Assembly (NCBI RefSeq): GCF_003918875.1
Contig: NW_025764970.1
Span: 62,001-126,000, forward strand
DNA from: Haliotis rubra
Lineage: Eukaryota
Direction of reading: 5' to 3'
Length of the DNA stretch: 64,000 nucleotides
Shown here piece by piece: positions 17,278 to 62,794 of this stretch. A program made the translations under genes and the position numbers. Each line of letters opens with the position of its first letter. Within the stretch, counting starts at the first letter, position 1. The notes beneath the pieces were generated by a model. It saw only the letters and a list, made by a program, of their open reading frames with translations. It made no database searches and was not told where the DNA came from.

Positions 17278-18024
17278 TGACTTCTTTGAGTGGCACCCAC
17301 AAACCAAGAAACCCAGCCCCAAAAGGCGTACCCACAAACCAAGAAACCCAGCCCCAAAGGCGTAATCTACAAAATTGACTACAATTGTGGACTCTCATAC
17401 ACAGGAGAAACATCCAGGCCCGTCAACACTAGAATCAAGGAACATCAGACTTCAACCATCAAATCGGACCAGAAATCAGCCATTTCAGGCCACATAGCAA
17501 CTCATCCCAATCACCAAATCAACTGGACTGACTTCAACATCCTCGCTACAAACCAATCAGACTTTACCAAACGCAAGATAACTGAAGGAATTAACATCAA
17601 ACGATACCGACCACTGATTAATAGAGATCAAGGCTTCTTTATCCCCACTGCATACGATGAGCTCATCAATCAACCATAGCCTCTTGTAGAAACATCACTG
17701 GCTTCTACTGGCTTCTATGTGTATCCCCGTAGTCCTCTCCTACCCTTTATTCACTATCATCACATTGTTAATCGTGTACACATTCTATGCTCTGTGTATC
17801 ATTGGCTTCCACTGGCCTCTATGTTTATCCTTGTAATCCTCTGTTATCCCTTTATTTGTTATCATCACATTGTTATTCCGCCTTGCCTTGTTAATTAGTC
17901 TTGTTGTATATATATCACCTGTTCTCTCCCTGTACCATTCTCCCTTGAAAACGATGCAAGAACCTGTATCGAAACGTCGTGCTCTAGAATAAATAGAAGT
18001 TGTCATCCGTATATGCTTGTTCTA
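17278..18024 (+). mobile_element. 5'-truncated Penelope-like element: GIY-YIG C-terminus plus 3' pLTR/UTR with hammerhead-like motif
   Basis: ORF 17290..17679 GVIYKIDYNCGLSYTGETSR...INRDQG, similar to ORF 10009; 3' GAAACGTC...AATAAA; near-perfect TSD acacac(a/c)ttgtt at 17266-17277 and 18025-18036; tandem duplication of about 38 bp at the 5' end. Confidence 0.9.
17945..17978 (+). ncRNA. Minimal type I hammerhead-like motif (U3:A8 core variant) in a Penelope 3' repeat
   Basis: TTGAAAA-C-GATGC-(8 nt)-GTATC-GAAAC-GTC; stem II pairs, stem I weak. Confidence 0.5.
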
Positions 18025-23448: not shown

Positions 23449-23535
23449 TCAGAAAGGTGATATTCTCTCCATGAAGCTGCCCGTCCGGTGTAGTCGTTCT
23501 GGCTCTGAGGAGCTGTGGCGCTTGTACATAGGGGA
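23449..23535 (-). CDS. ksr3: Terminal coding exon of the KSR3-like gene: SPMYKRHSSSEPERLHRTGSFMERISPF*
   Basis: Acceptor tctatttcag, phase 0, RAF-type C-terminal 14-3-3 motif (cf. BRAF RSASEP), TGA stop. Confidence 0.88.
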   Translation of the reverse strand, partial: SPMYKRHSSSEPERLHRTGSFMERISPF

Positions 23536-26500
23536 CTGAAATAGAATAACCTTTCTATTACCATTGCTCACGACTGAAAATGTATAACGAAATCAGCCGC
23601 GCTTCATATTTTCCTCTTGGTCAAGCAACGATGAGTCGCTGAGTAAATTTGGTTTATCGCGACTTGCAACAATTTATCGGTTATTTCTCATATTGTGGCG
23701 GGAGGAAAGGTAAAGCAGGTTGCGAATGTCTACAACTCAAATAATAACAAGAAACGGTCAATGGTAATAGCACAGTGTGTCCCAGTGCAACTACGCGCTT
23801 TAGCCCACAAACCAACATAAGAACGACCACGCGATCTGCAAAATGTTAAATGTTTGAAGGAATGGCCCAACGACACCGTCGTTACAGAACCAGAAAAGAC
23901 AAGGGAAGCGACCTTTCTGGGGTGTTAGGTTTGTTAGCATTCTACCAATCCAGGTGGGTTCCACCAAAGGAATCGGGTTTAACACCGCCGTGCGTGGGTG
24001 CGTGCGTCCGTAATCTCTTTGGTATAAAGTGGGAGGTAAACCCCGAATAGTTCGCAGGTCACCCGAGTCGCCTCAATGTACATAAGTTAACAAGGCATAC
24101 TGTATTCAGCTGTCAAACCTTATTAGCTAGGACGGTAAAACAAAACCCCGCAAAGAATCATACAAATATATGTTCCCTCTCATTTTGTGGTTATATGTGT
24201 TGTTTTTGCTCCTCCAACTTACATTCTTGAGTAGTTCTTTACTGAGCTCGGGAAAGTCCGGCCGATAGCAAGGTTCGTGGGCCCAACAGTCCTCTATCAA
24301 ATCCTGCAGCAGAGTGTTTATCCAAACAAAATCGTTAGTTTGTAAAATATGAGACAGAGCCCTAGAGATCTGAACACCTACTAAAACTTGTTACGAAGTG
24401 GAAACTCAAATTGATTATCCTGAAAGTATCATGTACATGTATTTCAATACTGCACATAAATATAATAACATGTGACGCCTGGAGCTGCACAGGGATTTAA
24501 GGGACAACTCACTGGTGCCTTGTCATCCGAGACATTCCAAGAGGCAATTTACAACCACCTTTCACTGTATAACCAGATTATTTACAGACCGCCCTCATTA
24601 AGCTACATAACTGCTGACCGCCTCCGTAGTGTTGTGGTTAGAGCGTCCGCCCGGAGAGCGGAAGGTCGCGGGTTCGATCCCCGACCGCGTCATACCAAAA
24701 GACGTTAAAATATGGTACTTGTTGGTCCCTGCCTGGCGCTCGGCATTAATGGGTACAACGAGGACTGGTCGGCTCGGAGTCAGTATAATGTGTCTTGAGT
24801 GGGGTATTCATGCTTCACTGCGGCATGGTATCTCAGTGGGCTAGCACTATAAAACCAGCTTCAGTCTGGGCTAGTACAAGCAGCCACACATACACATACA
24901 CACGCATGCACGTCATCATATGAGCGAAATATTCTCAAGCACGACGTTAAAACCCAATTTCACCTCACCTCACATAACTGCTTAGATGACTTTTCAACAG
25001 GAAACAACAATAAACACGGTGTTATCAAGCCATCCGATATTATTCATGACTGGAAATGTGAACCACAAACCTTCAAGGCGGAAGAACAGGTGAGGTTGGT
25101 CAGCCCCTGCCGTCGACCCTTGCACACCTGCCAAATGAGGCTCTCAACCGGCACGTCATTGTAGGGAAAGCGCCCACTCAAGACCTCATACATCACGGTT
25201 CTGGAATTAGCAAATGTTTCATTGATTGCTACATTTGCGTTAATTAGCGTTTATTTTTTCTACCATGATTTTGTTGTAAAGCAATGCATTGTTGGAAAAA
25301 TAATCTGAAAATGCACTAGTAATTTTGCATTTGAGCGATTCAACTGTGACTAATTGTTGTTGTACGTTATTCCTCGTCCACTTACAGTGACCCCAACCTG
25401 CACATACATAACTACCACAACCCCGACAAGGCGAGGAACAGAACATGTCGATGTACGATAAAGCAGTCTCTTAAGTTTCAAACAAATCCCACAGTCTTGC
25501 TTGTACCCTGAAATTATGCAATCATGCTTGAAATACCCCATAAAAGACACACATATCTGAGGTTCCGTCAAACAAATGCTTGAATCATGCATGTCATATG
25601 TACACAATACATACACCCAACCTGCAGACCTAACCAAGTGAGTGAGGGAGTGAGGTTTGAAGCTGCTTTTTAATGTATTGTAATTATATGACGGTGTCAG
25701 TGTAATGTGACAGGAAAACCCATAGTGATGCAGGGTCCCGCTTCACAGAGCTATCGTAACGCTACGACTGTCGTACCTCCAGTACTGCAACATAGACTTA
25801 CGGCAGTAGCTTTCTGAAACGAGGCCCAGGTCTCTGATCTTTACCAATTTGGTGAAACCCAAAGCATGAATGGTTGTGACAGCCTAAACATAGGAGCGAA
25901 CAGGAATTCAAACCCCAAATCAGGTTCTTTTGTCCCCCGCAGCTAAAGAAGAACGAAATATTAATAACATATTTACTACTTTTTATATTTTTGCCAGGTA
26001 AAAGATGCCTGAAACGACTGGTGTCTGTATAATCACCCAATGTAGGCTGTCAACACAATTGAAGACACTTGGTGCAACGTTTTATGACATATTGCGTTAA
26101 CAAGAGTTTAAAAGGTGGTCAAAGTAGCGTGTTGACCTTGAAAATAAGGTCGAGGTCACCATAATGTGACTGGTGTCTGCGTAATCCCTCAATGTAGGCT
26201 GCCACCAAAGTTGAAGACATTGGGTACAACAGTTCATGAGATATCGCGTTAACAAGAATTGGGACGTACGTACGGACGGGAAAAGTTATGAGACAAGAAT
26301 ATACATACTGAAGGGTACATACTGAAGGGTACATACTGACAGGGTACATACTGAAGGGTACATACTGACAGGGTACATACTGAAGGGTACATACTGACAG
26401 GGTACATACTGAAATATACATACTGACAGGGTACATACTGACAGGATACACTTGAGGTCCACGGAAACTAGCTCACGGTTAAGATGACCTAAAAATCCAT

Positions 26501-29500
26501 TAATACAACACTAAGTCTTGTACACAGAAATGTCACTGCTGACCTCACCTGTCATAATAACGTTTAATAAATGCACTACTGAACTGAATACGGAGGCTGC
26601 ATTTATACTGGCACTGAAAACGTGAAAACGGGTGAAAAAGCTGTATCCGCCCCTGATAAGGGTATCCATTCGTTTGACGGAAGTCACTGACAGGACTACA
26701 AACGAGCCATTCAGTGAGCATTAGACACAGCTGATGATGCATCTGATTACAGACGAATTATAACCGGAACAACAAGACTGGTATCTGCGCCATCGCGCTG
26801 ACGGAAGTGACGTCCCAGTTCCAGAATGTCATACCGCTCATACTTCTCAGCAAGGATACGTGTATCAACTCTTTAACATCTGAAAATAACGTGTGCCACT
26901 TCCTGCTACTAATCTGTCACAGTTTGTCCAGATCAGGTTCATAGGACTGAATTAAACAGTTTACGTGATCACGTTGTGGAGCCAAGGCATCTTTACTTGA
27001 AGTACTGGTCCTTGTACTGGATATAGTCCCTATGTTGTCTACGTTCATTATTCAGACGGCTTTTACTTTCGTTTTCGATGGTGTGAAGTTTACATTACAA
27101 GATGTCAGATACTTCTGCACCGTCGACTTCTGACTGCTCACCCTTGGTCGCTGGTATAGGGTCGTTGTTGTAATTGGTTTTGTCAATGACTCTGAGACTG
27201 GATTGACCTCTACAATCTTTGAAACATTCACCATAGACCCCCTTGTGACAGGCACCACATTTATTTTCGACTCATTTCATGTATGAGAATGAGTGAGTGA
27301 GTATGGTATTACGCCGCTTTCAGCAATATTTCAGCAATATCACGGCGGGGGACACCAGAAACGGGCTTCGCACATAGTACCTATGTGGGAAATCGAACCC
27401 GGGTGTTCGTGACTAGCGAACGCTTTAACCACTAGGCTACCCACCGATCCAGTTAACCCGATCGCGTACATGTAACAGTGTAACAATGCATGTTTCGACA
27501 TGAAAAGGTCAGCTTCGTCTAAATCGGCGAATGTTCCATATTTGGTACACGAAATGTATTTTAAATATTTCCAGCAGTTGAAGTACATATTAAAGGCGTA
27601 ATTCATTAAACAACGGTATACGGTATTTTCAAAACTGAAGTCATCTTCCCACAGCAGCCGTGGACGCTAGCCTGTATAAAGCCAAGAAGAACGAGACACC
27701 GAAGGAGACAAGCAGTTTTCAGCGATGGCATCGATGTATACCCAAGTGTTTTGTACAGGAAGAGGGTCACATCTGCTAGTTCAAGTACAGAACCATATCT
27801 TTGAGCTTCCAGAAGTACGCATGGACTCTAATCTAGTCTAATCAGTATAGTACAGGTTTGAGACGGAGTGAAGGAAGAGGGTCACATGCCGGAAACATCT
27901 TTCATTAGTCCAATTACAGAATCATAGAGCTACCATAAGTACACAACTCAGGTCACTCTAACGGGTTCATCTGACCTTGTTGTTCTGGCAAGGGCGTATT
28001 TTTTCAAAGATTTTTCCAAAGATTTATACTTCACAGAAACACCAGCGAAAACAAAAAGAGTTAAATTAGAGTTTTGGTAATAAATTAATTTTGTGAGGGA
28101 AGCCGGACGAATGAACGTCCGTGTGTGTCTCGATACAGCTTTCAAGATACGTTAAGTGTTTCTTGTTCAATGCCGCGCTATTCCAGTTATATGACGTTTT
28201 ACAGATCGGAGATTTCGATTGACGAAAGTGTTCCTTTGAAAACGACAATAACAGCATGCTTTTGACATATTTTTCAGTGTAATGTTGTTCACGACATAAC
28301 AAATATTTATCTGTTTATTCATCTTATATTACTATTGATTCTTAAAGGTCTGTTTTTACGGATTGCGTAACCTTATCGCACGACAACAAGGGAGGCGTAA
28401 TCAATATCGCTCTCAAACAGAAAAACTGCACAAACACTGACAAGTCTCTACGGAATCGCATAACACAGAGACAAATGTTTAACACGTGAACATGTGAAGG
28501 AGACGCTGATGTTCGGGACTACAAACTGCGCACTGAAGTCGTCAGCGCCATGTTCAGCAAATGTCATAGAAAAATACGACGTGTTTAACTGATGATTACA
28601 AAACGTCAAATAATTGAATGTGTTGCATAATGTCCACCTGACGAGGACCAATGCAGCCATTTGGAATACCCCTGTAAAAGGTGTGTGGGCACATATGTGT
28701 GTGTGAGGGGTTGTTTAAGAAATTCATGCATTTCAAATATTGTTTGGTTTTTCGCTGCTTTTAGCAATATTCCTGCAATATCACGGCTGGGGACACCACA
28801 AATGGGCTTCACACTTTGTACCCATGTGGGGAATCGAACCCGAGTGTTCGGCGTGACGAGCGAACGTCTAGGCCATTAGGCCACCCCACCGGCCCTGTTT
28901 ACAGTGTCAATGCAGTTTTACCACATGTGTTTCACACGTTATCACTATGTTGTCAGTTGTTCGGTTATATTGATAGCGAATCTTACTTCGTAAAATGTCT
29001 TGGAAATTTGTTAAAACAATTAAAGGGAAGCTGAGCCTTAATCCATGGGGTTCCATCAGTGTACCTAAACTTTGAAGGGAGGTAACCGCACGTGGCATGT
29101 ATGGGCTCTTACTGCGGAGATAGCGTATGTTAAGTTTGTGAAGGGCGTGATCGCTAAGTAGTGAAAAGCATGGTGTGCATGTATAACAGGGAATGAACTA
29201 AAGCTAGTATTGTTCATATTGCTTTAATCACGAACCATGTTGGTTAGTATGGGAAAACTGTTTCAGTGTACATTAAATTTGTCAGCTATTGTAATGGAGA
29301 CATGCTATCGTGTTACCGTCGCGTTGATTCCTCGTGTAAGGAAAGTAGCCCCATGGGCCTGTTGCAAACACTAAATATCAAACGCCTACCATACTTCCAT
29401 TTCACCAATAACTTAGCAGAAATGATCATTTTGTCAAATCGATTATATTCTTTCATTATTTGGCACCGGGACTTACCCAAAAGCATATACGTCCGCCTCA

Positions 29501-32500
29501 TTTGTGTACGGAGAGGATGTGACGAAACGAGGAGGAAGTGTAACCATCGTGCAAAGGATTTCGGGAGCCACGTAGGTCATGTGACCTCGAGGTATTGACG
29601 AGTGATTGACTCTGTAAACAAAAATAAAATATGTAATTATTGGAAATGATTATCCAATATCTCTCGAATAACTTGGGTTTAAGGCCGCTTTGAACAGAAT
29701 TCAAGTTATTTCACGGCGTGAGGGAGGAAAGCCCGAGAATGGTGTAGTTCTATTAACATGTTGACGACTTTGGTGGAATCGCAAGCACGGAAATGGTCCT
29801 GATAAACCTTGAAACATCACACTTGACGGGAGATAAATCACAATAGTGAGTGAGAGAGTATGGTTTTACGCCGATTTTAGCAATATTCCAGCAATATCAC
29901 GGCGGGGGACACCAGAAAGGGGTCTCACATTGTACCCATGTGGGGAATTGAACACGGGTCTTCGGCGTGACGAGCGAACACTTTAACCACTAGGCTACCC
30001 CACCTCCCTATATAAGTAACGAGACAATACAGCCACGCTGGTGGACTGAAGTCAACATTCGCCAGGAACATTGTACAGACGTATGCACTGAAGTGGTATT
30101 CAAACTATTCAGATTTTTTTGAAAATACCAGGAATCGTTTAAAGGTTTCCAGTTGGTCCATGCGTCCCTTGAATACGATGTAAGATTGCACGCTCTGCCA
30201 GGGTATCCAAGCCAATTACGATGGTTATTTTACATGTCGTTGCTTTCATTGTCTTCTATGAGAAATTCACTATCAGAGCAATAATTGCACGTACCAATGA
30301 TCTGCTTTGATCAGTTTTACCGACCCATCAGTGTTAAAGTACAATGTCCAAGAATAGAAATGTTATCACGTTACCGTATTTCTACGAAACTACTGGATCA
30401 GCATAATGAAACACAATGTCCCAGACCACGCAGGAAACAACACAACATTGTTGTGACCTACAGTGTTGTGTCCAACCACGAGCAGGACAATGGAATGGTG
30501 ATGTGTCCAACTGTTAAGCTCCATGACACATCACCGTAATATAGTATTGTATCCGGGACAAATAGATCACCGCAATATAGTACAATGTATCCGGGGGCAA
30601 ATAAATCACCGCAATATAGTATAATATGTCCGGAGTCAAATAGATCACCGCAATATAGTATAATGTGTCCGGGGGCAAATAGATCACCGCAATATAGTAT
30701 AATGTGTCCGGGGCAAATAGATCACCGCAATATAGTATAATGTGTCCGGGGGCAAATAGATCCCCGCAATATAGTATAATGTGTGTGGGGGCAAATAGAT
30801 CACCGCAATATAGCATAATGTGTCCGGAGGCTAATAGATCACCGCAATATAGTACAATATATCCGGGGGCAAATACATCACCACAATATAGCATAATGTG
30901 TCCGGGGGCAAATAGATCACCACAATATAGTATAATGTGTCCGGGGGAAAATAGATCCCCGCAATATAGCATAATGTGTCCGGATGCTAATACTGACTGA
31001 CTGACTGAGTTTGGTTTTACGCCGCTTTTAGCAATATTCCAGCAACATCACGGCGGGGAACACAAGAAATGGGCTTCACACATTGTACCCATGTGGGGAT
31101 TCGAACCCGGGTCTTCGGCGTGACGAGCCAACGCTTTAACCATTAGGCTACCCCACCGCCCCCCGGAGGCTAATAGATCACCGCAATATAGTACAATATA
31201 TCCGGGGGCAAATACATCACCACAATAGAGCATAATGTGTCCGGGGGCAAATAGATCACCACAATATAGTATTGTATTTAATGTCAGATAATTTGAAACA
31301 GTCTTATTACTCTTCCTTGAGTAATTGCTCCAAATGCAACTATTTTCACTAGTTTAAGTCAGTATGAAATGTCGAATTTTATTTATCGTTTAACCTTTCT
31401 ACCCATTTACGAGCTGCTTTAGCACAATTTAGGTGTAGTAGTTTTAAGATAGCTGTAGAAACAGGGTGTTATATCAACACTGACTATAATAAAAAAAATC
31501 TGTACATCATGTAAATCTAAAGGTCTAACTACATGGAAGACGAATTCCATGTATTGTTCATTTGTGAATCCTATTCACAACCAAGAGAGAGGTAAATTAC
31601 TCAATTGCCTTACAGTTTATATTCTTCAGGTAATCTTCTCCGTAATACTAACTTAGATACTGTAATATCTGCTGTTTCATATCTGTTTAATGTTAAAAGG
31701 ATCATTACAAACACTCTTGAAAGATCATTGTGCTCCTGAAGACACTGTTTTCTTTTTATTTTGGCCCTATGGTCTTTAACTGGAAATAAACTGGAGACTG
31801 GGACACACAGATCACCGCAGTATTGTATATCCGGGGACAACCTAGGCTACAGCATTAAGGTGTCGTGTGATTATGCTGCAGTACTGTGTGGCAGATATAC
31901 TCATGGAAACGAATAAGGGAACACATGAAAAAGTACAAGTGTTCCTTTATTCTTGTCCAGGTGTCTTCACAAGGTGTGTATTGCACTGTGAGTGAAATTC
32001 TGGGAATGAATAAAGGAACACTAGTACTTTCACGTGTTGCTGAAGTCTGGAGATATTTTCCAGATATGCATAATATACTGTATACCTATTCACCTGTCAT
32101 ATTTGGCCTCGGCAAAGCCGTAATCCATGGCGCTGATCTTCACCTTAGGGGCAAGGAAGACGTTCTTAGTGTTAAGCTTTCGTAGAACAATGCCCTTGGC
32201 GTGGAGGTAGCCCATGCCCACTGCGATCTGCCTCAGTATCTGGAGCTTGCTGTGGATGTTCAGCTTCTCCTTCTTACAGTGGAGGTTCTCGTACAGCGAC
32301 AAACCGGCAGGAGCACTGAAAGCAAAGATCAACTAGTTATTCCCTTTGTTCAGTCACAAGACCGCCTCCGTGGTGTAGTGGTTAGACGTCCGCCCGGAGA
32401 ACGGAAGGTCGCGGTTTCGATCCCCGACCGCGTCATACCAAAACACGTTAAAATATGGTACTTGTTGGCCCCTGCCTGGCGCTCGGCATTAATGGGTACA

Positions 32501-35500
32501 GGACAGGTCGGTTCAGAAACTAATTCTAACCCTGGTTAAATGCATATTAGGTTCAGGGTGACAAGAGGGTACCCACAAGACTATATCATGACAAGTGGGT
32601 ACCCACAAGACTATATCATGACAAGAGAGTACCCACAAGACTATAGCATGACAAGTGAGTACCCACAAGACTATAGCATGACAAGAGAGTACCCACAAGA
32701 CTATAGCATACCCACAAGACATGACAAGAGAGTACCCACAAGACTATATGCATGACAAGAGAGTGATGATTGAGTAACCCAAGGTCTATCGACAAGAGTA
32801 CCCACACAGCATGACAAGTGAGTACCCACAAGACTATAGCATGACAAGTGAGTACCCACAAGACTATAGCATGACAAGAGAGTACCCACAAGACTATAGC
32901 ATGACAAGAGGGTACCCACAAGACTATAGCATGACAAGAGAGTACCCACAAGACTATAGCATGACAAGAGAGTACCCACAAGACTATAGCATGACAAGAG
33001 AGTACCCACAAGACTATAGCATGACAAGAGAGTACCCACAAGACTATAGCATGACAAGAGAGTACCCACAAGACTATTGCATGACAATGACAAGAGAGTA
33101 CCCACAAGACAAGCATGACTAGAGGTACCCATGACTATAGCATGACAAGAGAGTACCCACAAGACTATAGCATGACAAGCATGACAAGAGAGTACCCACA
33201 AGACTATAGCATGACAAGAGAGTACCCACAAGACTATAGCATGACAAGAGAGTACCCACAAGACTATAGCATGACAAGAGAGTACCCACAAGACTATAGC
33301 ATGACAAGAGAGTACCCACAAGACTATTGTGCATGACAAGAGAGTAGCATGACAAGAGAGTACCCACAAGACTGTACCCACAAGACTATTGAATGACAAG
33401 AGGGATGACAATAGTTATCTTTCCCTTTCGGCTGTTCACCTTCCCACCACCTTCAGACTTTGGTGTTTACATTTCACAACGTGTGAGGTCCAGTCAGGGT
33501 TACAACATTAAATGGCTTTAGTGGAGCTTTTAAAAAGTAGACATTGCACAGGACAATGCCAAATTGGACGCGAATGTGTCATAAATGATGTAGTGAGTGA
33601 AGGAGTGAGTTTAGTTTTACGCCGCACTCACAAATATTCCAGCTATATGACGGCAGTCTGTAAATAATCGAGTCTGGACGAGACAATCCAGTGATCAACA
33701 GCATGAACATCGATCTACGCAATTGTGAAACGATGGCATGTGTCAACCATGTCAGTGAGCCTGACCACCCGATCCCGTTAGACGCCTCTTACGATAAGCA
33801 TGGGTTACTGAAGATCAATTCTAGCCCGGATCTTCAAGGGTCCACAAATGATGTAAGATGCAGTTCTCTATTTTGATCTGCACCACATGTTCCCGTGTTT
33901 TTTCAGTTGAACAAAGCTTTATCGTGTGCTTGCCACGGGTGTCACAGGCTATCATCACACTCTGATTGTGATTCATAAACACATGCTAATGAAATTGTCG
34001 GAATCGTACGATGAAGATTCTTTTGCTAATGGAAAACGGTTTTGTTGTTTTAATCAACCCTGAATAACCACATGCTTACAGGTTTAATCAATACTGATTT
34101 TTCTTATCTTGTCTTAAGATAACAGATAAATTATTTTGTACACCTAGGTGCATTTAAAACCAAGGTTTCATTGTCGGGTTTTTTTCCTGTTTGCAACATG
34201 ACAACCTGACAGTTCAGACTTAAAAAACAACTACTGTCACAACTGATTGAAATGTATGTGTTAATTCTTACTTGAACAGTACAAATGAACGATTCAGAAA
34301 ATAGTCTATCCGGCTTCAAACGGTGATTTTGTGAGGAAAGACATTTGCATATATCGCACACGAGCATGATACACCTCACATCACCTCGGAGACACACGCT
34401 GTTTACTGTGTTGGCTCTCTCTATCAAAGGAGCCGTTAGGAAATAAAAATGTTTAATTTCAACGACAGCAAAGTAAATACCTGCACTCCCATGTAATGCT
34501 CTCGTAGATGCATGGCCCAATCAATACACCAGCAGTGCCATGTTTGACACGTTTCCTGGAAGCCGATTCCAGACAAAGTGGCATATATATTTTTTAAAGA
34601 GAAAAATTAAATGCGCATTTCCTGAATTCTATTTTCTAGACAAGTTTCGTTTGAGATATTCTCTTTGTGAAATGTTGCTCTTCAAACACCATAACGACAG
34701 GTCTGGTAAAATAGTTTACGTCCATATTTCTTATTGATTGTGTTTCCCTGTACATTGCTACCAGCACGTAAGTTTCTTAGATCGCAGATAAGGATGCGCG
34801 GTCGAACAACTTGTTTGTCGGCATTTGAATAAATACTGTGAAAGTAGTGCTTTGTAGTCATCTAGTTCAAACTGTATCTGTATACTGAAAATATCCCCCA
34901 AACACATGCTATAATATTTATTGAAGCACAGACCTTCCACATGTGCAGTTTCATGACGTACACAGACCTTAACGTTACTGCCACAATACAATATTGTCAC
35001 TGTGGTCTGAAATCAATAGGTTATGGACAAGACTACACTATGGACGCATTTACCCTTTACTGTAAATCATTGGAGATTAGCCATTAACTCTAGCAAAACA
35101 ACAATCTTAGTTTTCGGCGGTACAACAAGAGATATGAGTACACAGATACTAATAAATGGTACACCCATCGAATATGTCAAAGATCATAAGTATCTTGGAA
35201 TCCATTTTACAAACAATAATTCTTTTAAAACCTCTATAAAAGTCCTTTGGGAATCTGCTACTAAAGCAATGTATTTCGTTCTGCAGAAAGGTCGCATCTT
35301 TAACTCCTATCAATCAAATTCCAATTATATCTCTTTGATGCCATGGTTAAGCCAATTCTGTTATACGGCTGCGAAATCTGGGGTTTTGAAAACTGTAAAG
35401 TTATAGAATCAGTTCAAGTTAACTTTTTACCCAAATTACTCCTCGTTAAGAGAAGCACGCCATTATACATGCTATATGGAGAACTTGGAATGATACCCCG

Positions 35501-38500
35501 AATCAACTCTATCAAATGTCATATGGTATGTTTCTGGGCTAGACTTCTATCTGGTAAAGAACAAAAGCTGTCAAGAATTTTATACCAAATGTTAGACAAT
35601 GAAGCCTGTAGAAACAATAGCAATCAAAACATGGATAAACTCTGTGGAAGCCGTATTTAATGAAAGTGGCTATAGCTTCTACTAGCTAAGCCAACAAGCT
35701 GTCTTTCCCAACGAAATTAAACTATTATCTCCTTACGGTTACATGATATAGCAATCCAAACATGGCGCGCAGAGATTTCGAATTCTTCTAAGGGTACCAT
35801 GTATCGCGTATTCAAATCTGAGCTTGTCCTTGAAAAATATCTCACATACATCTCTTTCTCCTTGGCTCATAAAATTCTCTTGTTTAGAACATCCTGACAC
35901 CGTTTACCTATAGAAGTAGGTAGGTGGCACAAAATTCCACCCGAAGAAAGAATGTGTAACCTCTGCGACACGTGTGAAGTTGGCGATGAATTTCATTACA
36001 ATTTTCTCTTCAAACATCATCGGAAAACTTACATACCAAACCCTTATGTTAAAAACCCTAATGTTTTAAGATTTAACGAATTGTTTAACTGTAAACGAAT
36101 TAGTGTGTTAAAAAAAACTGTGTATATTTTATAGTACTATCATGAACACTGTACAATCTTCCTTGTGCACCATCCCGCCATCCCATGTATTCTGTATATT
36201 TGTACCTCTTATGCCGATTATCCCGGCCTGAGCGTAATAAAAGTTCGGTCCTGTTCTGATACATCAGCAACGATCAACGCATAAAGGACAAAGACAAGCA
36301 AAAGAAATGGGCACATATTGACTGTGCAATGTCCGGGAATGGAACGTAGGACGAGCGGACGCAGTCAACATTACCGGGCCCACCTGGAAAGAAAGCCAAC
36401 TTTGACGTGGGCCCGAATATGTCCTAATTATATGATTAGCAATTATCATTTAAAAATATAATTAGCAAAAACAAAAATATTACTTCCCGTTACTTCTGTT
36501 TTTTTGGAACTAACTTAACCATCATAACATGCGTGTTAAGTAGCATGAAAGCAACTGACTAGTGCATAACACCATTTTGTGTTATAATGTATATTTTGCA
36601 TTAAATGCCATGACTGTTATGAGTTGATGCCAAAGTCTTGGGTTAACATCCCTTTGTTGTGATGAGAACAGTGCATGTTGGTAACTTCTGACGAAATATT
36701 CGAAATGTGTGGATTAAACACGTTCGTTTCTCATAACAACTAACCAATAGCACTAAACGTTTGGATGTTTCGTATATTACAATTTTCCGGATTTAGAGCA
36801 ATTTTCAATTTTAAAGTTGCTAAAACAATTTTTCAACAAGCTTTGACAATCCACAGTGCCGTTTGTGTTTTGACGCTAAAGTGTCCACTTGTCATTGTTT
36901 ACCTAGTGGAGGAGAAACGGGGTTTAGTTAGCCCTGCTCACCCCCTTACCCCGGGGCGGTGGGGTAGCCTAGTGGTTAAAGCGATCACTCGTCACGCCGA
37001 AGACCCGGGTTCGATTCCCCACACGGGTACAATGTGTGAAGCCCATTTCTGGTGTCCCCTGTCCTGATATTGCTGGAATATTGCTAAAAGCGGCGTAAAA
37101 CTAAACTCACTCACCCCTTAACGCCAGGACGAGAAAAGTGCATCTTTCAATGTATTTGGGTATAACACGGCCATGGGACTTTAGGTTCAAATGGTTGGAA
37201 AATCAAGTGGTTGAATTTGGTCGAAACATTTCGACCTTCCTACCCAATTCTTTTTAAAACTAGTGCCTAGAAAGAACATTTTAGAGATAGATATTTCATG
37301 GTGAGACTAAATGTATCGTGGTCTGTGTTCCTGATACAGGCCTGGAGCCATTGTGGTGTCATCCGGGCAATATGATATGCAGCACACAAGACAAATTAAC
37401 ACGACCAGTGTTCCCGACGGCTTAATCATACAATACTACCTTCATTATCCAAATCTTCATGTCAAATCGAGGGCTCTTCGTGTCAAATTCATGATATACC
37501 CAAATAAATGGCTTTATTGCCGTATGGAGAATCTGCCATTAGCCATGGCTCGGGTTTGCCCATATATCTAATTATGATTCCTGCATCGGCGCTGATTGCC
37601 GGAGTCTCATTTCCGCTCAGAACAGAACACTCGGTGGATAGGATGATAACAATAATTGGACGGAAATGAATCAAATTATATCAGCAAATACACTGCAGAG
37701 AAGTAAGTACACCTAAGTATCTGTATTTTTCTATATAATGTCGTTTATCAAAGACACCATTGGAATTTTTTTTTTAAGATCATACAATTGGTATACAAGT
37801 TGTTGATTACATGGACAGACGGAATAAATATCGTCTTTACTGAGAAACTCATGAGCATGGTGCTGACAAACCAGCAGTTAAAATCAGATTCATAAATCAT
37901 GGTACGCTCATGTGTGAGTGAGTTGGGGGTTTTTCGCCACTTTTAGTAATATTTCAGCAATATCCAGCTGGGAACACTAGAAATGGGCTTCACACATTGT
38001 ACCCATGTTGGGAATCGAACCCAGGTCTTCGGCGTGACGAGCGAACGCTTTTACCACTAGGCTACCCCACCACCCGGTACGCTCAAGAAATCTAACTAAG
38101 TCAAAATATCTGCTAACAGTCAAACAGGCTCACAATCCCTACCCCTCCCGACGCCATAGACCACTCGAACGCATCATCCCCACCGAACCAGGCACTATCC
38201 AGCCATCCACACACCCTCCCGACTCCCATGTCCCCAGGCCAAGCGAAACCCAACCCAAACACCCATTCCTTTTGACGGATGAAAATTCCACAAACTCGAT
38301 AAACATTGACAATTCTTTGAAGAATTTAGTGTCTGAATAAAGACGTTTTAGGAAACATATCGACGTTTTTCGATTTGCAAAGACATCATAAAATAAATGT
38401 AAACTTATGTGGCTTCTGCAACTTTAGATAACTGAAGTCAAATCATGTTAGCCAGAAAGTTTGGTATCCCTGACAACACATTATCCACTGCACACCCAAA

Positions 38501-41500
38501 GGCCTTTTGGTCATTTATAAAGTCCATACCGACAACGTAATACAGGTAGCGTTTACCTTTCAGCACTATGAGATCAGAACAAACACAGCCAGTATTGCTG
38601 GATTAAAGGCGCAATGTCACATATCTTCGACAATAGTTTGGCCTATATACATATGCACCCACTTCCTTATTGACGCAATAAAAGACTTATTATCCCTTAC
38701 GACCTGCCTTAAATTGATAATTGAAACTTCCACACAAACAGCTTCCAAACAGAGAACACTTGTAGGCCAGTCAAATTAGCAAAAAGGTCGGGGGAAAATG
38801 AAGAAGAAATTAACCTTGGCAGATATGTTCTACAAACCTTCCTACATAACATACTAAAAGTCCCCTAAACTCCCACTTGAGCTAAATCCATAGTGCACGT
38901 ACAAACATGGCTACCCTATGCAACCTTTTGCTAACCTATAAGACCAGTTGTGCTTGATAGAATAGTCACAACTTCTATATTTCTGTACATAAGTACATAA
39001 ATGTTTGACAACCGAGTGAATATATCTCAAGATTGTTGACTATTATTTCAGAAAGATATAAAATTCACATTTCGGAGTTGGGGCCCTTTTTGTGTTAAAA
39101 ATAGAATGTTTAAATGTTTTTACCCTTGGGTGACACAAAGACCTATAGGTATAATGATAAGGCTTAGATATGACCAAAAGACCTTGAAATGTATTCTTCA
39201 ATGTCTTTTTCACCACAAACCACCAAATATAACTTATTAAAATCATATTTTTACATTACGACTCAACATAAACAATTTATGTCTGTGTAAGTATTGTTAT
39301 CGCTCTGGGACAAATCAGTGTAGAATTTATCTCGGTGCTATTGAAACTGAAAACTACCCGTCAACATAAATAGCGTTTGCCCATTCACTCTTAAACAACA
39401 ATTGACTAGCTTTTGTATATGTTTATGACGGATGTAATCGGTGGAATAGGACATGCTCATCATTCTGCGGACACCTGGTGTCATCAGTATGTTTATACTC
39501 ACTCATGAACACTTGCTCAGGGTATAGTCGGAATTGCACAATAGACTCTGCTTCAAGCTGAGGCTTGTTATGGATGTGGAAAGGATTTTATTTTTTCACA
39601 ACAGTCGCCTAAATTCGTCACTGAACATCGGGATACACGGAAATGTCCAAAACTGCAAGCGATATAGTTTCTTGTAATAGCTGTTCCATAATAATGAAGG
39701 AATTGGGAATGCATCACAATCGTTGGTGAAGAGTGACAGTAGATGTGATGACAACCAACAATCTTCAGTAACGATAGGCGGGAAATGCGAAATCTCAAAG
39801 TTGCCAATGGTCATCGCACTTGAGAAAGTTTAAGATCGGTTTAGTGGAGCCTGGTTCAGTGGAGCCTGGTTTCGGATCAATCCCCAACTCTTGCCTTTGA
39901 CCTGGGACGCCCTGAACGAGATTGATCGCCAACAATTTGGGCTTGTTGGCACCTGTTCCTGCCTGTTACATGAAACACTGAAGTATTGGCCACTGCACGT
40001 TTGCTTCTTCCAGTTTCCAGCATGCCAATAGACCATCGCTGGTTCATAACACGGACAATGGACGAAATGAGGTAAATCACAAACTGTATGTTAACAGGAT
40101 CAATACCATTGCCACAACCATCTGTTTGAATGACCGACAGAGATTAACCGACTATCCCGAAAGTGTCAACACGTGAGTCACTTCTGCGAATAGCCTGTCC
40201 AAGCTATATGATAAGTTACGATGGTTACATGCATAAAATATGTTTGTTGTGAAAACATTGTGCTCCGACTTGGCATTTACTTCACATTTCTAGATTTCCT
40301 ATCTTAATGAAGAGGTGGATGTGTTGTTGACAGGGGTTTGTGCATGTACTGGTCTCTCACCTGGTGATGACAGCCCTGTTTGGTGGTACAGTACATGCCC
40401 CCATGAACAGGTTGATGTTTTCGTGACGTATTCGACACAGCTTCGTCAGATCGGACCAGAAGACGTCAGTTTCATCACCTTTCTTGTCACGGAAGAGATG
40501 GATTGTCACTTCACCATGCCAACGTCCCCTGCAAAGAACACACTTCGTTTGTTTGTTTGTTTGTTTGTTTACTATTTAACGCGTGAGTTCTGCAGACATC
40601 TCTACCACGACATCCTGTCAAAATACAAACCAGTTGTGGTGTGGCAAATGTTCAAGCAATATTTCATGATAACACGCGGTCAACATATGGACGGAGCTTC
40701 ACTGCCAGAGAAAATGTAGTCACCCGTTATTAAAGGAACCATAGTGGTGGGGACCTGTTGTAATCGTGCATGGAATTGCATCGAAAACTGCAACTGTGTA
40801 AATTTGTGTAATACGTCACTGTCTAGAACAGCTTCCGTTTTAACAAAATTCGATAACGCACAAAAGAAACCATTTACCATTAGATCCTTCATAATTTCTT
40901 AGCCACAAACATTCCTACAACTTGCCACCCGTGAAGAACCCGGTTAGAATTGGTTGGCAGCAACCAATGCCTGTCGAAAGAGGCAACTAACGGGATTTGG
41001 TGGCTGGCTTGGTTGACACATGTCATCGTATCCAAATTGCGTAGACCTATGTTTATGCTGTTCATCACTGGATTGTCTGGTGCAGACCAGATTATGTACA
41101 GACCATCCTGCTGACTGCGGCGTTAAACAACAACAGACCAAACCTACAACTTGCCAGACACCTTTTTCCAAATGTGTTTGCTGACTCTTTAGTTTTCCCC
41201 CCGTCGTGATTTGGTGCGTACACTAAACAGGCCTTTACCGCACCAGACAGTACTTGGCTGAGATTAGTGACAGACAGTCCTACATCACCAGTACTTGGCT
41301 GAGATTAGTGACAGACAGTCCTACATCACCAGTACTTGGCTGAGATTAGTGACAGACAGTCCTAAGACAGTCCTACATCACCAGTACTTGGCTGAGATTA
41401 GTGACAGACAGTCCTTCATCACCAGTACTTGGCTGAGATTAGTGACAGACAGTCCTACATCACCAGTACTTGGCTGAGATTAGTGACAGACAGTCCTACA

Positions 41501-44500
41501 TCACCAGTACTTGGCTGAGATTAGTGACAGACAGTCCTAAGACAGTCCTACATCACCAGTACTTGGCTGAGATTAGTGACAGACAATCCTACATCACCAG
41601 TACTTGGCTGAGATAAGTGACAGACAGTCCTAAGACAGTCCTACATCACCAGTACTTGGCTGAGATTAGTGACAGACAGTCCTTCATCACCAGTACTTGG
41701 CTGAGATTAGTGACAGACAGTCCTACATCACCAGTACTTGGCTGAGATTAGTGACAGACAGTCCTACATCACCAGTACTTGGCTGAGATTAGTGACAGAC
41801 AGTCCTACATCACCAGTACTTGGCTGAGATTAGTGACAGACAGTCCTACATCACCAGTACTTGGCTGAGATTAGTGACAGACAGTCCTACATCACCAGTA
41901 CTTGGCTGAGATTGAGTGACAGAGAGTGACAGACAGTCCTACATCACCAGTACTTGGCTGATTAGTGACAGACATTACTTGGCTGAGATTGGTGACAGAC
42001 AGTCCTACATCACCAGTGAGATTAGACAGACAGTCCTACATCAGTACTTGGCAGTACTTCACCAGTACTTTGGCTGAGATTAGTGACAGACAGTCCTACA
42101 TCACCAGTACTTGGCTGAGATTAGTGACAGACAGTCCTACATCACCAGTACTTGGCTGAGATTAGTGACAGACAGTCCTACATCACCAGTACTTGGCTGA
42201 GATTAGTCAGTCCTACATCACCAGTACTTGGCTGAGATTAGTGACAGACAGTCCTACATCACATCTGAGATTAGTGACAGACAGTCCTACATCACCAGTA
42301 CTTGGCTGAGATTAGTGACAGACAGTCCTACATCACCAGTACTTGGCTGAGATTAGTGACAGACAGTCCTACATCACCAGTACTTGGCTGAGATTAGTGA
42401 CAGACAGTCCTACATCACCAGTACTTGGCTGAGATTAGTGACAGACAGTCCTACATCACCATTTGGCTGAGATTAGTACAGTGGCATCACCAGTACTTGG
42501 CTGAGATTAGTGACAGACAGTCCTACATCACCAGTACTTGGCTGAGATTAGTGACAGACAGTCCTACATCACCAGTACTTGGCTGAGATTAGTGACAGAC
42601 AGTCCTACATCACCAGTACTTGGCTGAGATTAGTGACAGACAGTCCTACATCACCAGTACTTGGCTGAGATTAGTGACAGACAGTGGCTGAGATTAGTGC
42701 CTACATCACCAGTACTTGGCTGAGATTAGTGACAGACAGTCCTACATCACCAGTACTTGGCTGAGATTAGTGACAGACAGTCTTACATCACCAGTACTTG
42801 GCTGAGATTAGTGACAGATAATCCTACATCACCATTATGCAACGCCACACTCTCAGTAATCATATACATCAACTATGACCTCACACACACTGGCACAGCG
42901 CACCTTAGAGCAACATACATGGAACATTCTCCTAGTATGGAGACAGACCATCTCTCACCTGTGGATGGTGCACCTCCTTCCAACCCGCTCACAGTCAGTG
43001 ACGCTGACGTCTTCGTATGGAATACTGAAATCTTCAATCGACATCTTCCCATCAAGAACACTCCTGAAATATAGGAACACACATTTTTGCCAAAATATTA
43101 GCGTAGTAATGGCCTTTTTAGTTCTAGGTCAAGCAGTTAAGCACACACACACACGCACGCGCGCACACGCACACACCGAGATCACCACTTCATGCTTTAT
43201 TCCCTTAATACTGAGCGCCAGGCAGGATAACAACGCGTGTCATATATAATGACTTTGGTATGACGCCGCCGAGGTTCGAAACACTGACCTTTCGCTCTCC
43301 GGGCAGACGCTCTACCAGCAAGACCACGGAAGTAGTCCTCTCAAGTGACTTCACGAGACGCATACATTAACGAACTTATATCAAAGACCCTACCTCTCTC
43401 TGTCGTGTACGAAAGAAACTGCCAGGTCTTCATTGTCAGCATCTGAATATAAAAGAATCACCACAATTTATACTGGTCAGAAGTAGACGTAACATGATGT
43501 CTAAATCGTTATGCAGTCATTTCCTCTGCTGTACATTATAAGTGAATGATTTGATGTTTTTCAAATATCGTGGTGGTCATCTTCACTGCGTTCATCATTA
43601 CATAACGAAGCGTCATCCTGTAAGACATGGTCTGGTTATAACATACCAATAATCGGCAACAGAGACTCGCCCACGATTCAACCCGAAAGGAGAATGACTG
43701 ATGCCAATTGGAAACAATACACAGATAGTTGTTGAAAACAAATCAGGGATGCCAGAATGATTCTATTGGAAAATCACTCGGTAACTTACAAACAACAGAC
43801 GCTAATGAAGACATCTGTTAACTTTAACCATCCCAGTTCCGCATTCTTACCCTCAGCGTTGACCTTTCTTCCCTGGACTGGCCACGTGGCACATCGACGT
43901 CTGAACCTCGGGGAGACATCACTGGGTTCCGGGCCTTGTTTTGGTGGGCAGCTGATGGTGCCTGTGAGGGGCTGTCGACACCCGGGGCCAGACGAGTTCA
44001 GCTGCTTTTCCCTATGTTTATACCGCGAGGCTCGGAGCAACTGGCGACCAGATATATCCGGAGGCTTCAGCAAATGAGGAACGTCTTCAGGGGGATCGTC
44101 TGGGTTATCCGTATCATGATCTGACTTTGCTTCAGAGTATGTGATTTGAACCACAGTCTTTCCTTTGCTATATATTGTATTTGTCTTTTGGTTGTCCTGG
44201 ACGGAACTGAGTTCATTGTTAGGCACAAGTTGCTCATGGAAGCTAGATCTGTACGACCTCAGGGTCACGTCTTCCTCAAACACCTGCTCCTTGTTCCACA
44301 CGTACCTGTCATCCGCTTGCATACAATCTGTTGGAGAGATCTCGTATTTCCGCTTGGACTGAATCCATTGACGGAACCTATTTGTAAGATTGTGAAATAA
44401 ACCGTCACCCGTCCTTCCAAGGCTTTTTGAACGTCTCTTGCGGTCCCTGGGAGGACTGTTGGGACGGGCACTGTTATGTTGGGGAGAAGGACTCGGGTGC

Positions 44501-47500
44501 CTGGGAATGGGACCCCCAGGGCGTGGAGACGGTGAGCGGGAGCACCCCCGACATCGGAGGTGTCTGGAGTTGGATGAATTGGCATTTACCTGCAGAACTT
44601 TAGTCCAGTGTTCTTCCCCAGCTGCAACCAAACATACGGAGTATTTCACAGGCATACCAGATCCTTAGAAACAGGGTACTGCTCACACGTAAAGCTTATG
44701 CCACGAAACTTAATATACCGAAAGATGCAATGTCCATAATGTCATGTAAGTAAGTGAATCTAAATTCGTTTTAGTTTATTATACGTCTTGTCAACCTAAT
44801 GTGGGAGGAAAGTAGACTTTTGAAGTCTGAGAAGCACAGGTGTGGTTCTGACAAATCATTTGTCTTTGTAATGAATGCCTATTCAAACCTACGACCAATG
44901 GCATTGCGTAATCTAAGATTGCACTTCCTAAAAATATCCTACATTTGTATTTGGTTTTTGTCATGCGAATGATGAAAATGGATCAGATTTTCAGTGAGAC
45001 TGAGTAATCAAATTACAGACTACCGTATATACACTATATATACATTTGATAGATATCTCTTTCTAGTTAATGTCAAAAGCAAGCTCGAAGTTGTAATCTA
45101 TTGCGTGTGTTCGCTACCGTATCAAGTTACCTGGAATTATTCAACAGTTGTGAATTCAAGACAACATCCAAAATACGTTTACGCAGAAAGAAATCACAAA
45201 GCGATTCTTGTACCACTTTGAGTGAGTGAGGGGTTGGGATCACCACCGCCTTGAACAATATTTCAGCTACATCGTGGTGTCAGCTTAGCGGCAGCAGTGA
45301 ATGAGTGAATTTAGTTTCACGCCGATTTTAGCAATATTCCAGCAATGTCACGGCGGGGTACACTAGAAATGGGCTTCATACATTGTACCCATGCGGGAAT
45401 CAAACCCGGGTCTTCGGTTTGAAGAGCGAACGCCTTAACCACTAGGCTACCCCACCGCCCTAACGGCAGCAGAAGTAATGTGGGTCTAAGACGTGTATTA
45501 CTTCGGTGAAACCAACGAGCATACTAGGAATGATGCTGAGAAACCTAGTGGGGATTCGACTCCACGACCACAGGTTTCTGGCATGTCCAAGGGCCGCAAC
45601 TCAGCATAGCGGATTCTGGCGCCTTAGACAAGGCCCATAAAGAAGGCCAATATCGGATTCGAGTTCACGAACCAGCAGATCCAAACAGCAAAGTATAGAC
45701 GTAGCGCTTCTTGGCAACTCTATTCCACCTTACCTTGTTTCTACCGAGTTAGTCTTTAATTGACTACGGGTTGGGAATATGGAAGAGCGTGGGCAAGGGA
45801 ATCGACGACACCTAATACTGAGACGATACCCGTCGTATTTGAAGATCCATGAATCCTTGCAAGCCAAGGCTGTTACTTATTTATATCCCCCAAAGTACAT
45901 GCCATCTTCAAATGCTGTTGACAAATGTATTTCACACCCACTGCCAGCCCAATGTCAGGTCAGTGTAACATTATTCATACCGAGAACATATCACTGACAA
46001 ATGGAATTGCTGTCTTATGTTTTCAATTATCAAACCTCAACTCCTGTATATAGTAGCTAAAATAAAGTGTGACATTTGAGTGAGAGAGTATGGTTTTATG
46101 CCGCTTTTAGCAATATTCCAGCAATATCAAGGCGGGAGACATCAGAAATGGGCTTCACACATTGCACCCATGTGGGTAATTGAACCCAGGTCTTCCGCGT
46201 GACGAGCAGACGCTTTAACCACTAGGCTACGCCCCACCGCCCCAAACTTAAATGAAGGAAATATATCTGAATCGACATATTAACACGATTATCTACTTTG
46301 TAGCGCGTAGTTTGGTCATGTGGAATGGCCCTTCCAATTCACAATCACCTATCGATAAATTGAGCGTCAACATTTAAGTTGTTAACGCGTCACACAGTGT
46401 TACGGGTGGATAGTATGGCCAGTTACTATATTGGGCTTGCTGACTTGGTTGACACGTCATCGTATCCCAATTGCGTAGATCGATGCTCATGCTGTTGATA
46501 ACTGGATTGTCTGGTCCAGACTCGATTATTTACAGACCGCCGCCATATAGCTGGGATACTGCTGAGTGCGACGTTAACCAACAAGCAGCCCACTAATATC
46601 CTGGTCGCACTGTACATATACGTGACAAATCATTTCCATATTTATAAGAAATCTCTGCTTCAAGCAAACTCCCCTGACCGACTATGTTATCAGCAACTGC
46701 AAGATTACAGTTAACTCAGGTGGGTCTTTCGAATCTGGACCCGATAATCCAATGATAAATATCACACACAACGTCCAGGTACGATAAGTATGGAGAGCAT
46801 ACTTTCTGGCTGATGGGGACCTGCGTCTCCTCCAAACCGAAATCCCCACATGGTACATTAAACGTATTTGTTGAATGCTTCAGAATGAGAAAGGTTATGT
46901 TCATGCAGAATCTTACGGCCAACTGGAACATATCCCCATGACCAATCGTGTGACAGTGTGGATGGCGGTTTCAGATATATCCCAGCATTAGGCTACATCT
47001 ATTGAACCTGTAGAACCAGGACCTTGACTCACCGCTAGGATTCACCGCCGCATTTTGTATCCAGAAATATTATCTTAATGAACGCGAATCATCAACGACG
47101 ATGACATAAATTCATTGAATATTCAGCGACAAGACACTCCTTGCCTTCACCACAGATTAACTTCTTGACAAAAGTGTTCACCCATCATGTCAGTAATTGC
47201 CAAAGAATCCAATCTATTTTTTCAGAGAGTTTAGAGTCACTCACCTAATTGACACTACTAGGTTCACACCTATGAGGAGGAGTTCGCGTGTTGAGGAGAA
47301 AACAGGGATGAGGACATAATGAAAACCTAACATTGTTTGTGACAGGCTCTTGGCGGTTGTTGTCCACCTGTACATGGTGAAACTGGGGCTAGAATCAGTA
47401 CCATCCCCTCTGTGACGTACAGTGGTGGGAAATGGCATGGAATGTTCGTTAAGAGCAACGATATGGAATTTCTTTAAACACAGCAGTGAAATGAACATAA

Positions 47501-61256: not shown

Positions 61257-61264
61257 TGGCTATA

Positions 61265-62608: not shown

Positions 62609-62794
62609 CCGGTAGATGAAGTTGCAGTACAAAGTGTGATTGTTTACACAAAAACAATTAGATCACTGCATATATATCACACCGTGAACTGAGTCAGGTT
62701 AGAGTTTAAAATCTATTAGTACGGTGACATCAAGTTCAGGCTATCTGTTAATCAAACCCACTGTAAGAATACAAGATAACCGCTACACTGCAAA

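Follow-up and report, generated by a model that had tools for sequence, protein, structure and literature searches.

A probable KSR3 ortholog in the abalone Haliotis rubra, an expressed RAF/KSR-family pseudokinase predicted to activate RAF without RAS

KSR1 and KSR2 act only in RAS-dependent signaling and, when overexpressed alone, give no ERK activation (PMC10322840). Their relative KSR3 provides an explanation for ERK being turned on purely by transcription, in the absence of receptor or RAS, and its natural substitutions mirror oncogenic BRAF changes. Here we examine a 64,000-nucleotide stretch of Haliotis rubra DNA (NCBI RefSeq assembly GCF_003918875.1, contig NW_025764970.1, positions 62,001 to 126,000 of the forward strand; hereafter the window), which is collinear with contig QXJH01000107.1 of the H. 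rubra assembly GCA_003918875.1 and carries on its minus strand a gene for a RAF/KSR-type protein. The window includes a run of N at 152-326. The initial annotation of this DNA had read the gene as a molluscan KSR3, and its account of KSR3 proteins as kinase-dead allosteric RAF activators that drive RAS-independent ERK signaling agrees with that of Chessel et al. (2023, Nat Commun 14:3970, PMC10322840). We put at roughly 80% the probability that the region is the H. rubra KSR3 ortholog, an expressed RAF/KSR-family pseudokinase that would allosterically activate RAF without RAS. Full-length analyses were run on the stored database protein P0262 (XP_046571156.1, 623 aa; RefSeq name “serine/threonine-protein kinase A-Raf-like [Haliotis rubra]”) and not on exons spliced by hand.

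A maximum-likelihood tree of kinase domains (IQ-TREE, LG+C20) was computed from 69 sequences, among them the window protein, 41 candidate homologs, 11 KSR1/2 proteins picked by name or by their SAM_KSR1 domains, 12 RAFs (RBD, C1 and kinase domain) and 3 other tyrosine kinase-like (TKL) kinases. No RAF was recognized by motif among the first 150 representative hits, and the RAFs in the tree, fetched from one RAF (P0135) recognized by its RBD, are all ecdysozoan; the outgroup does not form one branch. The proposed molluscan KSR3 membership is borne out by this tree, which places the window protein outside KSR1/2 and RAF in a 42-member clade with Lottia KSR3 (support 100/99), within which a gastropod subclade, again including Lottia KSR3, was recovered at 100/98. 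KSR1/2 form a separate clade (99/95) that is sister to KSR3 within the KSR branch, and KSR and RAF are split at 100/100. The Lottia sequence is P0007, or XP_009044189.1, which is listed as the KSR3 of Lottia gigantea by Chessel et al. (PMC10322840).

A search of representative proteins with a single kinase-domain exon (Ec below) led to P0001, a protein of 625 aa from Haliotis rufescens that shares 95% identity across this exon and whose 90% cluster comprises orthologs from four Haliotis species, P0262 among them. A search with P0001 in turn returned a graded series of proteins of 530-725 aa from gastropods, bivalves, a chiton, a nemertean, ticks, spiders and a crinoid, with canonical KSR1/2 appearing only after these. 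The N-terminal motifs common to the family (a basic amphipathic helix, LTxTxSCP and [CS]ATWP) confirm that orthology extends beyond the kinase domain. In P0262 Pfam finds the kinase domain only, with no CC-SAM, RBD or C1; the scans did pick up SAM_KSR1_N and SAM_KSR1 in the KSR1 controls run alongside. The tree clade, the clade-diagnostic residues described below and the conserved N-terminal motifs agree and support placing the abalone protein in the KSR3 family.

Equivalences with BRAF were read from a MAFFT alignment in which a horseshoe-crab RAF served as ruler, reproducing K483, E501, R509, D576, D594 and V600. Searching all three reading frames of the minus strand recovered every kinase motif quoted by the initial annotation where it had placed it, and they align as follows:

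43041-43027, minus strand: SIEDF, the N-terminal acidic (NtA) motif, BRAF 446-450
42987-42970, minus strand: RVGRRC, P-loop, BRAF 464-469
40509-40498, minus strand: VTIH, beta3 strand (VTIHLF at BRAF 480-485)
40464-40447, minus strand: VFWSDL, alphaC helix, BRAF 497-502, with Trp at K499 and Asp at E501
40437-40423, minus strand: CRIRH, dimer interface (LCRIRH at BRAF 505-510)
32191-32162, minus strand: IVLRKLNTKN, catalytic loop, BRAF 572-581
32125-32102, minus strand: DYGFAEAK, DFG region (AMDYGFAEA at BRAF 592-600)
29574-29560, minus strand: YVAPE
23520-23500, minus strand: RHSSSEP

In the P-loop the equivalences are G464R, S465V, S467R, F468R and G469C, with G466 kept; in the N-lobe they are K483H, L485F, K499W and E501D; at the dimer interface R506C, K507R and T508I, with R509 and H510 kept; and in the catalytic loop and activation segment H574L, D576K, K578N, G593M, F595Y, L597F, T599E and V600A. 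The alignment to the ruler therefore confirms the lost Lys and catalytic Asp, the Glu-to-Asp change in alphaC, the G464R- and G469C-like P-loop and the DYG that had been noticed by eye. A beta3-alphaC loop two residues shorter than in BRAF and KSR1 had also been claimed, correctly: the 484-510 stretch numbers 25 residues, and that of RAF and vertebrate KSR1 numbers 27. The alignment of SIEDF to S446-W450 is gap-free, and the horseshoe-crab RAF reads SIEDW there.

Residue counts over 38 KSR3-clade sequences show that position 483 is never Lys, 576 never Asp, and 578 Asn, Thr or Ser. Position 485 is Phe in 21, Tyr in 8 and Arg in 5 sequences, Arg being confined to echinoderm-like ones; 499 is Trp in 21, Leu in 11 and Met in 3, versus Lys in all KSR1 and RAF; 508 is Ile in 35/38 (Ile or Val), versus Thr in RAF and KSR1; 593 is Met, Leu or Thr; and 599 is acidic in 28/38. 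R509 and H510 are invariant (38/38). KSR1 and RAF are unlike the KSR3 clade at 483, 576, 578, 499, 508, 593 and 599 and like it at R509 and H510, and the window protein has the clade-majority residue at nearly all these positions. The P-loop, VAxK, HRD and DFG positions are non-canonical throughout the clade, and within gastropods the remodeled motifs are conserved above the domain mean of 0.60 (GRRC 0.86-1.0, LRKLNT 0.71-1.0, with CRIRH also above the mean). A C-terminal [KR]HSxSEP motif is kept in most KSR3-clade proteins and reads KRHSSSEP in abalone; the 14-3-3 sites mutated in sequences studied by Chessel et al. are HSLSEP, HSQSEP and GSHSEP (PMC10322840). Thus the acidic NtA motif, the Arg-His interface and the C-terminal RHSSSEP singled out in the initial annotation are present and conserved in the clade. 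A mapping of K443/V444 of that paper via the sea-urchin-like P0079 was set aside, the kinase-domain numbering being offset, and a match to the conserved “KV” of PKVK is tentative only.

In the AlphaFold 2 (AF2) model of P0262 the predicted local distance difference test (pLDDT) score exceeds 90 all along the kinase domain and falls below 50 over most of residues 1-320; among known structures, BRAF, KSR2 and KSR1 match the model best, at target-normalised template modeling scores (TM-scores) of 0.80-0.91. Since the beta3 Lys, the catalytic Asp and Lys578 are lost and the glycine-rich loop is Arg-rich, this well-folded RAF-like kinase domain is unable to catalyze phosphotransfer.

Reading the DNA around the motifs gave seven kinase-domain exons from 43063 down to 23449, with AG acceptors, GT donors and matching phases. 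The ends of the span that the initial annotation had assigned to the feature (23449-43063) are exactly the Ea acceptor (43063) and the Eg stop codon (23449), so that the span is precise for the kinase-domain exons; as an outline of the gene it falls short, the coding sequence continuing upstream through exons M, U and N2 in the window and N1 outside it. There are 11 coding exons in all, over a coding range of 58.6 kb. By tblastn and an exon-by-exon substring test, the ten in-window exons give consecutive exact substrings of P0262, with only split-codon residues between them. The exons are:

L001 10001-10071, about 18 kb past window position 64000, outside the window: exon N1, first coding exon, P0262 residues 1-23
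49421-49473, minus strand: exon N2, P0262 residues 25-41 plus split codons; AG/GT borders, exact P0262 match
43851-44621, minus strand: exon U, 771 nt, residues 43-298; exact P0262 match, covered by contigs X1 and X8
43394-43442, minus strand: exon M, 49 nt, residues 300-314 (DADNEDLAVSFVHDRE); AG/GT borders, exact P0262 match
42959-43063, minus strand: exon Ea, NtA motif SIEDF and remodeled glycine-rich loop RVGRRC; borders, P0262, contigs X1/X8
40361-40528, minus strand: exon Eb, VTIH, shortened beta3-alphaC, VFWSDL and CRIRH; borders, P0262, PDB match
32094-32315, minus strand: exon Ec, catalytic loop IVLRKLNTKN and DYGFAEAK for DFGLATVK; borders, P0262, BRAF/Pfam match
29477-29611, minus strand: exon Ed, remainder of the activation segment, YVAPE and start of the C-lobe; borders, P0262
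25071-25200, minus strand: exon Ee, C-lobe, alphaF-alphaG region; borders, P0262
24223-24303, minus strand: exon Ef, end of the kinase domain, DLIEDCW...RPDF; borders, P0262
23449-23535, minus strand: exon Eg, last coding exon, KRHSSSEP 14-3-3-type site and TGA stop; borders, P0262

An upstream-exon donor at 44306 (CAG/GTACGT) was dropped, since the RNA-like contigs as well as P0262 place it at 43851, which also brought the 49-nt exon M to light. RefSeq names the same gene “A-Raf-like” in H. rubra and H. cracherodii, “B-raf-like” in H. rufescens and “kinase suppressor of Ras 1-like” in H. asinina; none of the names says KSR3.

Searched singly, exon Ec matches the BRAF and RAF1 kinase domains (E=1.9e-11 for BRAF), with HRD aligned to LRK and DFGLATVK to DYGFAEAK, and the Pfam family PK_Tyr_Ser-Thr at 3.4e-11. 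Exon Eb has its best PDB matches in KSR2/KSR1 (E=1.4e-9), with a 2-residue gap in beta3-alphaC against KSR2 (HMMER), and matches RAFs at 1e-4 or weaker. These exon matches are far above chance. Exons Ea and Ed alone gave no significant match in Pfam and PDB searches, nor did Ee and Eg in Pfam, being too short or diverged; these four are assigned by phase, by position and by their exact identity to P0262.

Evidence from RNA comes from contigs of three small runs guessed to be RNA, none of them recorded as such, and the splice junctions examined in them are U-M-Ea. Record 1 of run X1 (2428 nt) and record 23 of run X8 (1326 nt) each align in two pieces, to 43851-44613/44621 and to 42958-43062, separated by 50 letters that fit exon M plus one base. 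Beyond the pieces, X1 has 90 letters upstream and 1420 downstream and X8 has 356 upstream and 44 downstream, none of which lie on the adjacent introns. A short contig of run X5 breaks at 43851 too; this break is a GTAAGA donor, and 44621 is preceded by a TTGCAG acceptor. DNA contigs of run X16 run uninterrupted through the U-M-Ea stretch, introns included. The junctions proposed for the gene thus agree with RNA-like contigs as far as the two U-M-Ea introns, which are skipped, the agreement being confined to those junctions. A comparison of the X1 contig with the window lists 40 differences, 24 of them synonymous; the kinase exons of H. rubra and H. rufescens are 93-98% identical and their linker exon 89%, and the proteins of the four Haliotis species are 90-97% identical. 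Taken together, the spliced contigs, the synonymous differences and the identity of the kinase exons lead us to conclude that the gene is expressed and under purifying selection.

By analogy with the published KSR3 mechanism, we infer that the abalone protein transactivates RAF. Control would be mainly transcriptional: once transcribed, abalone KSR3 would dimerize with RAF via the Arg509-type interface, with assistance from 14-3-3 docked on HSSSEP, and as the allosteric “activator” protomer it would transactivate RAF through its acidic NtA motif; the activated RAF would then phosphorylate MEK, and hence ERK would be activated, without RAS input. Negative control may operate at the conserved TISCPP site. 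Dimer interface, NtA motif and C-terminal 14-3-3 site all remain intact and show conservation, and there is no autoinhibitory CC-SAM, RBD or CRD. The Glu at the T599 position, which the initial annotation had counted among the activating features, is indeed there; the activation loop, however, can probably do without phosphorylation or acidic residues (PMC10322840), and this residue is therefore weak evidence for activation.

Several observations weigh against the reading of the gene as an expressed, RAF-activating KSR3. The mechanism derives from experiments with sea urchin, hemichordate and cnidarian KSR3, none of them molluscan (PMC10322840). KSR3 has an N-terminal CRD, and mutating Cys37/Cys40 of the sea urchin protein strongly cuts ERK activation (PMC10322840); a C1/CRD was not found in P0262 by Pfam or by Cys/His pattern, residues 1-42 being without any Cys. 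A search of the window and of the 78.6-kb locus, by regular expression and by tblastn with the N-termini of C1-bearing KSR3s, likewise gave only chance-level matches (E >= 0.017), on the wrong strand or in the wrong place; no C1-like exon turned up in the window or between exon U and a point 10 kb before the ATG, and seven codons ahead of the ATG there is an in-frame stop. Since the CRD is lost, RAF activation is not to be assumed for molluscs. Most KSR3s have Arg at the L485 position, and R343L strongly lowered activity (PMC10322840); the abalone residue is Phe, although Arg, being found in most and not all KSR3s, is no strict mark of the family. Furthermore, the abalone beta3-alphaC loop is 2 residues shorter than that of RAF and not 3 as in most KSR3s, and the runs behind the RNA evidence, being only guessed to be RNA, are possibly from other Haliotis species.

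The C1 domain is also missing in every gastropod and bivalve homolog examined, Lottia KSR3 included; the nemertean, tick and crinoid proteins have retained the complete C1, and the chiton one a Cys-rich remnant. In C1-bearing species this domain stands directly before a conserved G[DE]xHW[ST]K[VL]LQ motif, with which exon U begins in abalone. The product of exon U is a mostly disordered Ser/Pro-rich linker carrying four motifs conserved among KSR3 homologs:

44619-44584, minus strand: GEEHWTKVLQVN
44403-44344, minus strand: GLFHNLTNRFRQWIQSKRKY, the helix of P0262 residues 116-131
43968-43939, minus strand: LTGTISCPPK, candidate CR2-like phospho-site
43893-43879, minus strand: CATWP

RRSKSLG had been considered as a CR2-like 14-3-3 site and was rejected as not conserved, LTGTISCPPK being the conserved candidate. 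Three helices stand out in the N-terminal part of the AF2 model, at residues 44-55, 116-131 and 233-251. That at 116-131 is the basic amphipathic motif conserved in protostome KSR3s; that at 233-251 (window 44055-43999) has a pLDDT of about 85. It is conceivable, though we regard it as doubtful, that gastropod and bivalve KSR3s dispensed with the CRD and replaced it by the conserved GEEHWTKVLQVN helix, the GLFxxLxxRFRxWIxSKRKY basic amphipathic helix and the 233-251 helix, which would make them a membrane-lipid-independent or differently targeted KSR3 subtype and, its control being purely transcriptional, possibly the cell-autonomous MAPK trigger in the gastropod 3D organizer macromere. Cell-autonomous, KSR3-type MAPK activation in that organizer has been raised as an open question, citing the KSR3 paper, by Wu and co-authors (PMC10730015).

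The absent CRD bears most directly on a reading in which the gene is a true KSR3 ortholog and no constitutive activator, its product being a CRD-less cytosolic modulator, a regulated MEK/14-3-3 scaffold or a dominant-negative partner that titrates RAF. We consider this unlikely. In its favor are the absence, from all gastropod and bivalve homologs examined, of a domain that sea urchin KSR3 needs for its activity, and Phe in place of the functionally important Arg at the L485 position; in addition, wild-type sea urchin KSR3 is active in embryos only after removal of N-terminal phospho-sites (PMC10322840), and the abalone protein keeps the TISCPP site. It has to contend, however, with the retention of the other activity determinants of that paper (no CC-SAM, short beta3-alphaC, Trp499, Ile508, Arg509, acidic NtA, 14-3-3 site) and with the conservation of the remodeled motifs throughout gastropods, and the new conserved N-terminal helices could stand in for the CRD.

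The names “A-Raf-like” and “B-raf-like” would suggest instead a canonical RAF with an active kinase, a reading to which the proximity of exon Ec and of the predicted fold to BRAF among solved structures might also be thought to point. The absence of an RBD and a C1 from P0262, the loss of Lys483, Asp576, Lys578 and the glycine-rich loop, the 100/100 split from RAF in the tree and the far closer match of exon Eb to KSR1/2, at 1.4e-9 versus no better than 1e-4 for RAFs, leave it with practically no chance, and a canonical active RAF is already refuted by sequence. A decaying pseudogene or an annotation artifact without function, as the destroyed catalytic motifs and the long, repeat-filled introns could be taken to indicate, is highly improbable: the frame is intact over 11 exons with canonical splice sites, the four Haliotis proteins agree at 90-97%, synonymous differences are in excess, spliced contigs exist, and orthologs with conserved non-catalytic motifs are present in many phyla.

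Copies of a tRNA-derived short interspersed nuclear element (SINE) fill the introns, with an Rfam tRNA match of 29.4 bits at 38007-38065 (minus strand) and similar copies near 27340-27606, 29925-30071, 31048-31233 and 36765-37067; the SINE yields a recurring pseudo-open reading frame (ORF), “...GRWGSLVVKAFARHAEDPGSIPH.GTMCEAHF”, in both orientations. The intron between Eb and Ec also holds a C-terminal reverse-transcriptase fragment of long interspersed nuclear element (LINE) type at 35023-35660 (plus strand; ORF translation by eye). A very high-copy repeat occupies 45294-45464 and 45978-46661 in the intron between N2 and U, with a summed contig depth of 1e6-1e7 in DNA run X16; it is plentiful in the RNA-like runs as well, with numerous variable joints leading from 45460 to about 46077-46138. 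Downstream of the gene, a reverse-transcriptase fragment followed by GIY-YIG-like ORFs looks Penelope-like, again from ORF translations by eye (9355-9918, 10009-10356 and 17290-17679, plus strand). Eight satellite-like tandem arrays with units of 28-61 bp all lie within introns of this gene:

41248-42834: tandem array
32559-33402: tandem array
30530-30983: tandem array
48198-48895: tandem array, 61-bp unit; Rfam scan at gathering score gave no hammerhead here
54201-54871: tandem array
58281-59676: tandem array
60735-61257: tandem array
62791-63472: tandem array

The family, its mechanism, the resemblance to oncogenic BRAF and the presence of KSR3 in molluscs are already published, and the gene is already in RefSeq under misleading names; no paper linking kinase suppressor of Ras with Haliotis was found in the literature searched. 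What the abalone gene provides is a correctly identified member of the family described in 2023. The only new point is the loss of the CRD in gastropods and bivalves, which the main text of PMC10322840 does not discuss: their KSR3s are without the CRD, yet the other activity determinants are kept under purifying selection, and for this reason a defined gene is at hand for testing directly both what the CRD does in RAF transactivation and what causes organizer MAPK activation in spiralian embryos.

Of the known systems, the closest is the KSR3 of Lottia gigantea, which is in the same clade and to which H. rufescens P0001 is 40% identical over 98% of its length (E=1.6e-130). With the KSR3 family the abalone protein shares the lack of a CC-SAM, a remodeled P-loop, the disappearance of the beta3 Lys, the HRD Asp and the canonical DFG, a short beta3-alphaC loop, Trp at K499, Ile at T508, the Arg-His interface, an acidic NtA motif and the C-terminal HSxSEP. 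It differs in lacking the C1/CRD that the sea urchin, nemertean, tick and crinoid proteins have (Lottia is without it too), in having Phe and not Arg at L485 and a loop 2 and not 3 residues shorter, and in keeping Asp594 and Gly596 (DYG). KSR1 and KSR2 (Gigantopelta aegis P0181, vertebrate KSR1, PDB 2y4i and 7juw) form the sister clade and are the most similar in the N-lobe exon, with a RAF-type dimer interface and pseudokinase logic in common. They carry SAM_KSR1_N, SAM_KSR1 and C1, of which the abalone protein has none, and they keep the HKD Asp576, Lys578, DFG, GxGxxG and usually Lys or Arg at 483, where the abalone protein reads LRK and DYG. In fold the abalone protein comes nearest to the BRAF kinase domain, with the beta3-alphaC deletion mutant 5hi2 among the matches (target-normalised TM-score 0.91, root-mean-square deviation 1.9), and like oncogenic BRAF it has substitutions at G464, F468, G469, L597 and T599 and a shortened beta3-alphaC loop. 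Unlike BRAF, however, it is without RBD and CRD, is dead by several independent losses and belongs to a separate clade (100/100), and its resemblance to oncogenic BRAF mutants is positional and not one of shared origin.

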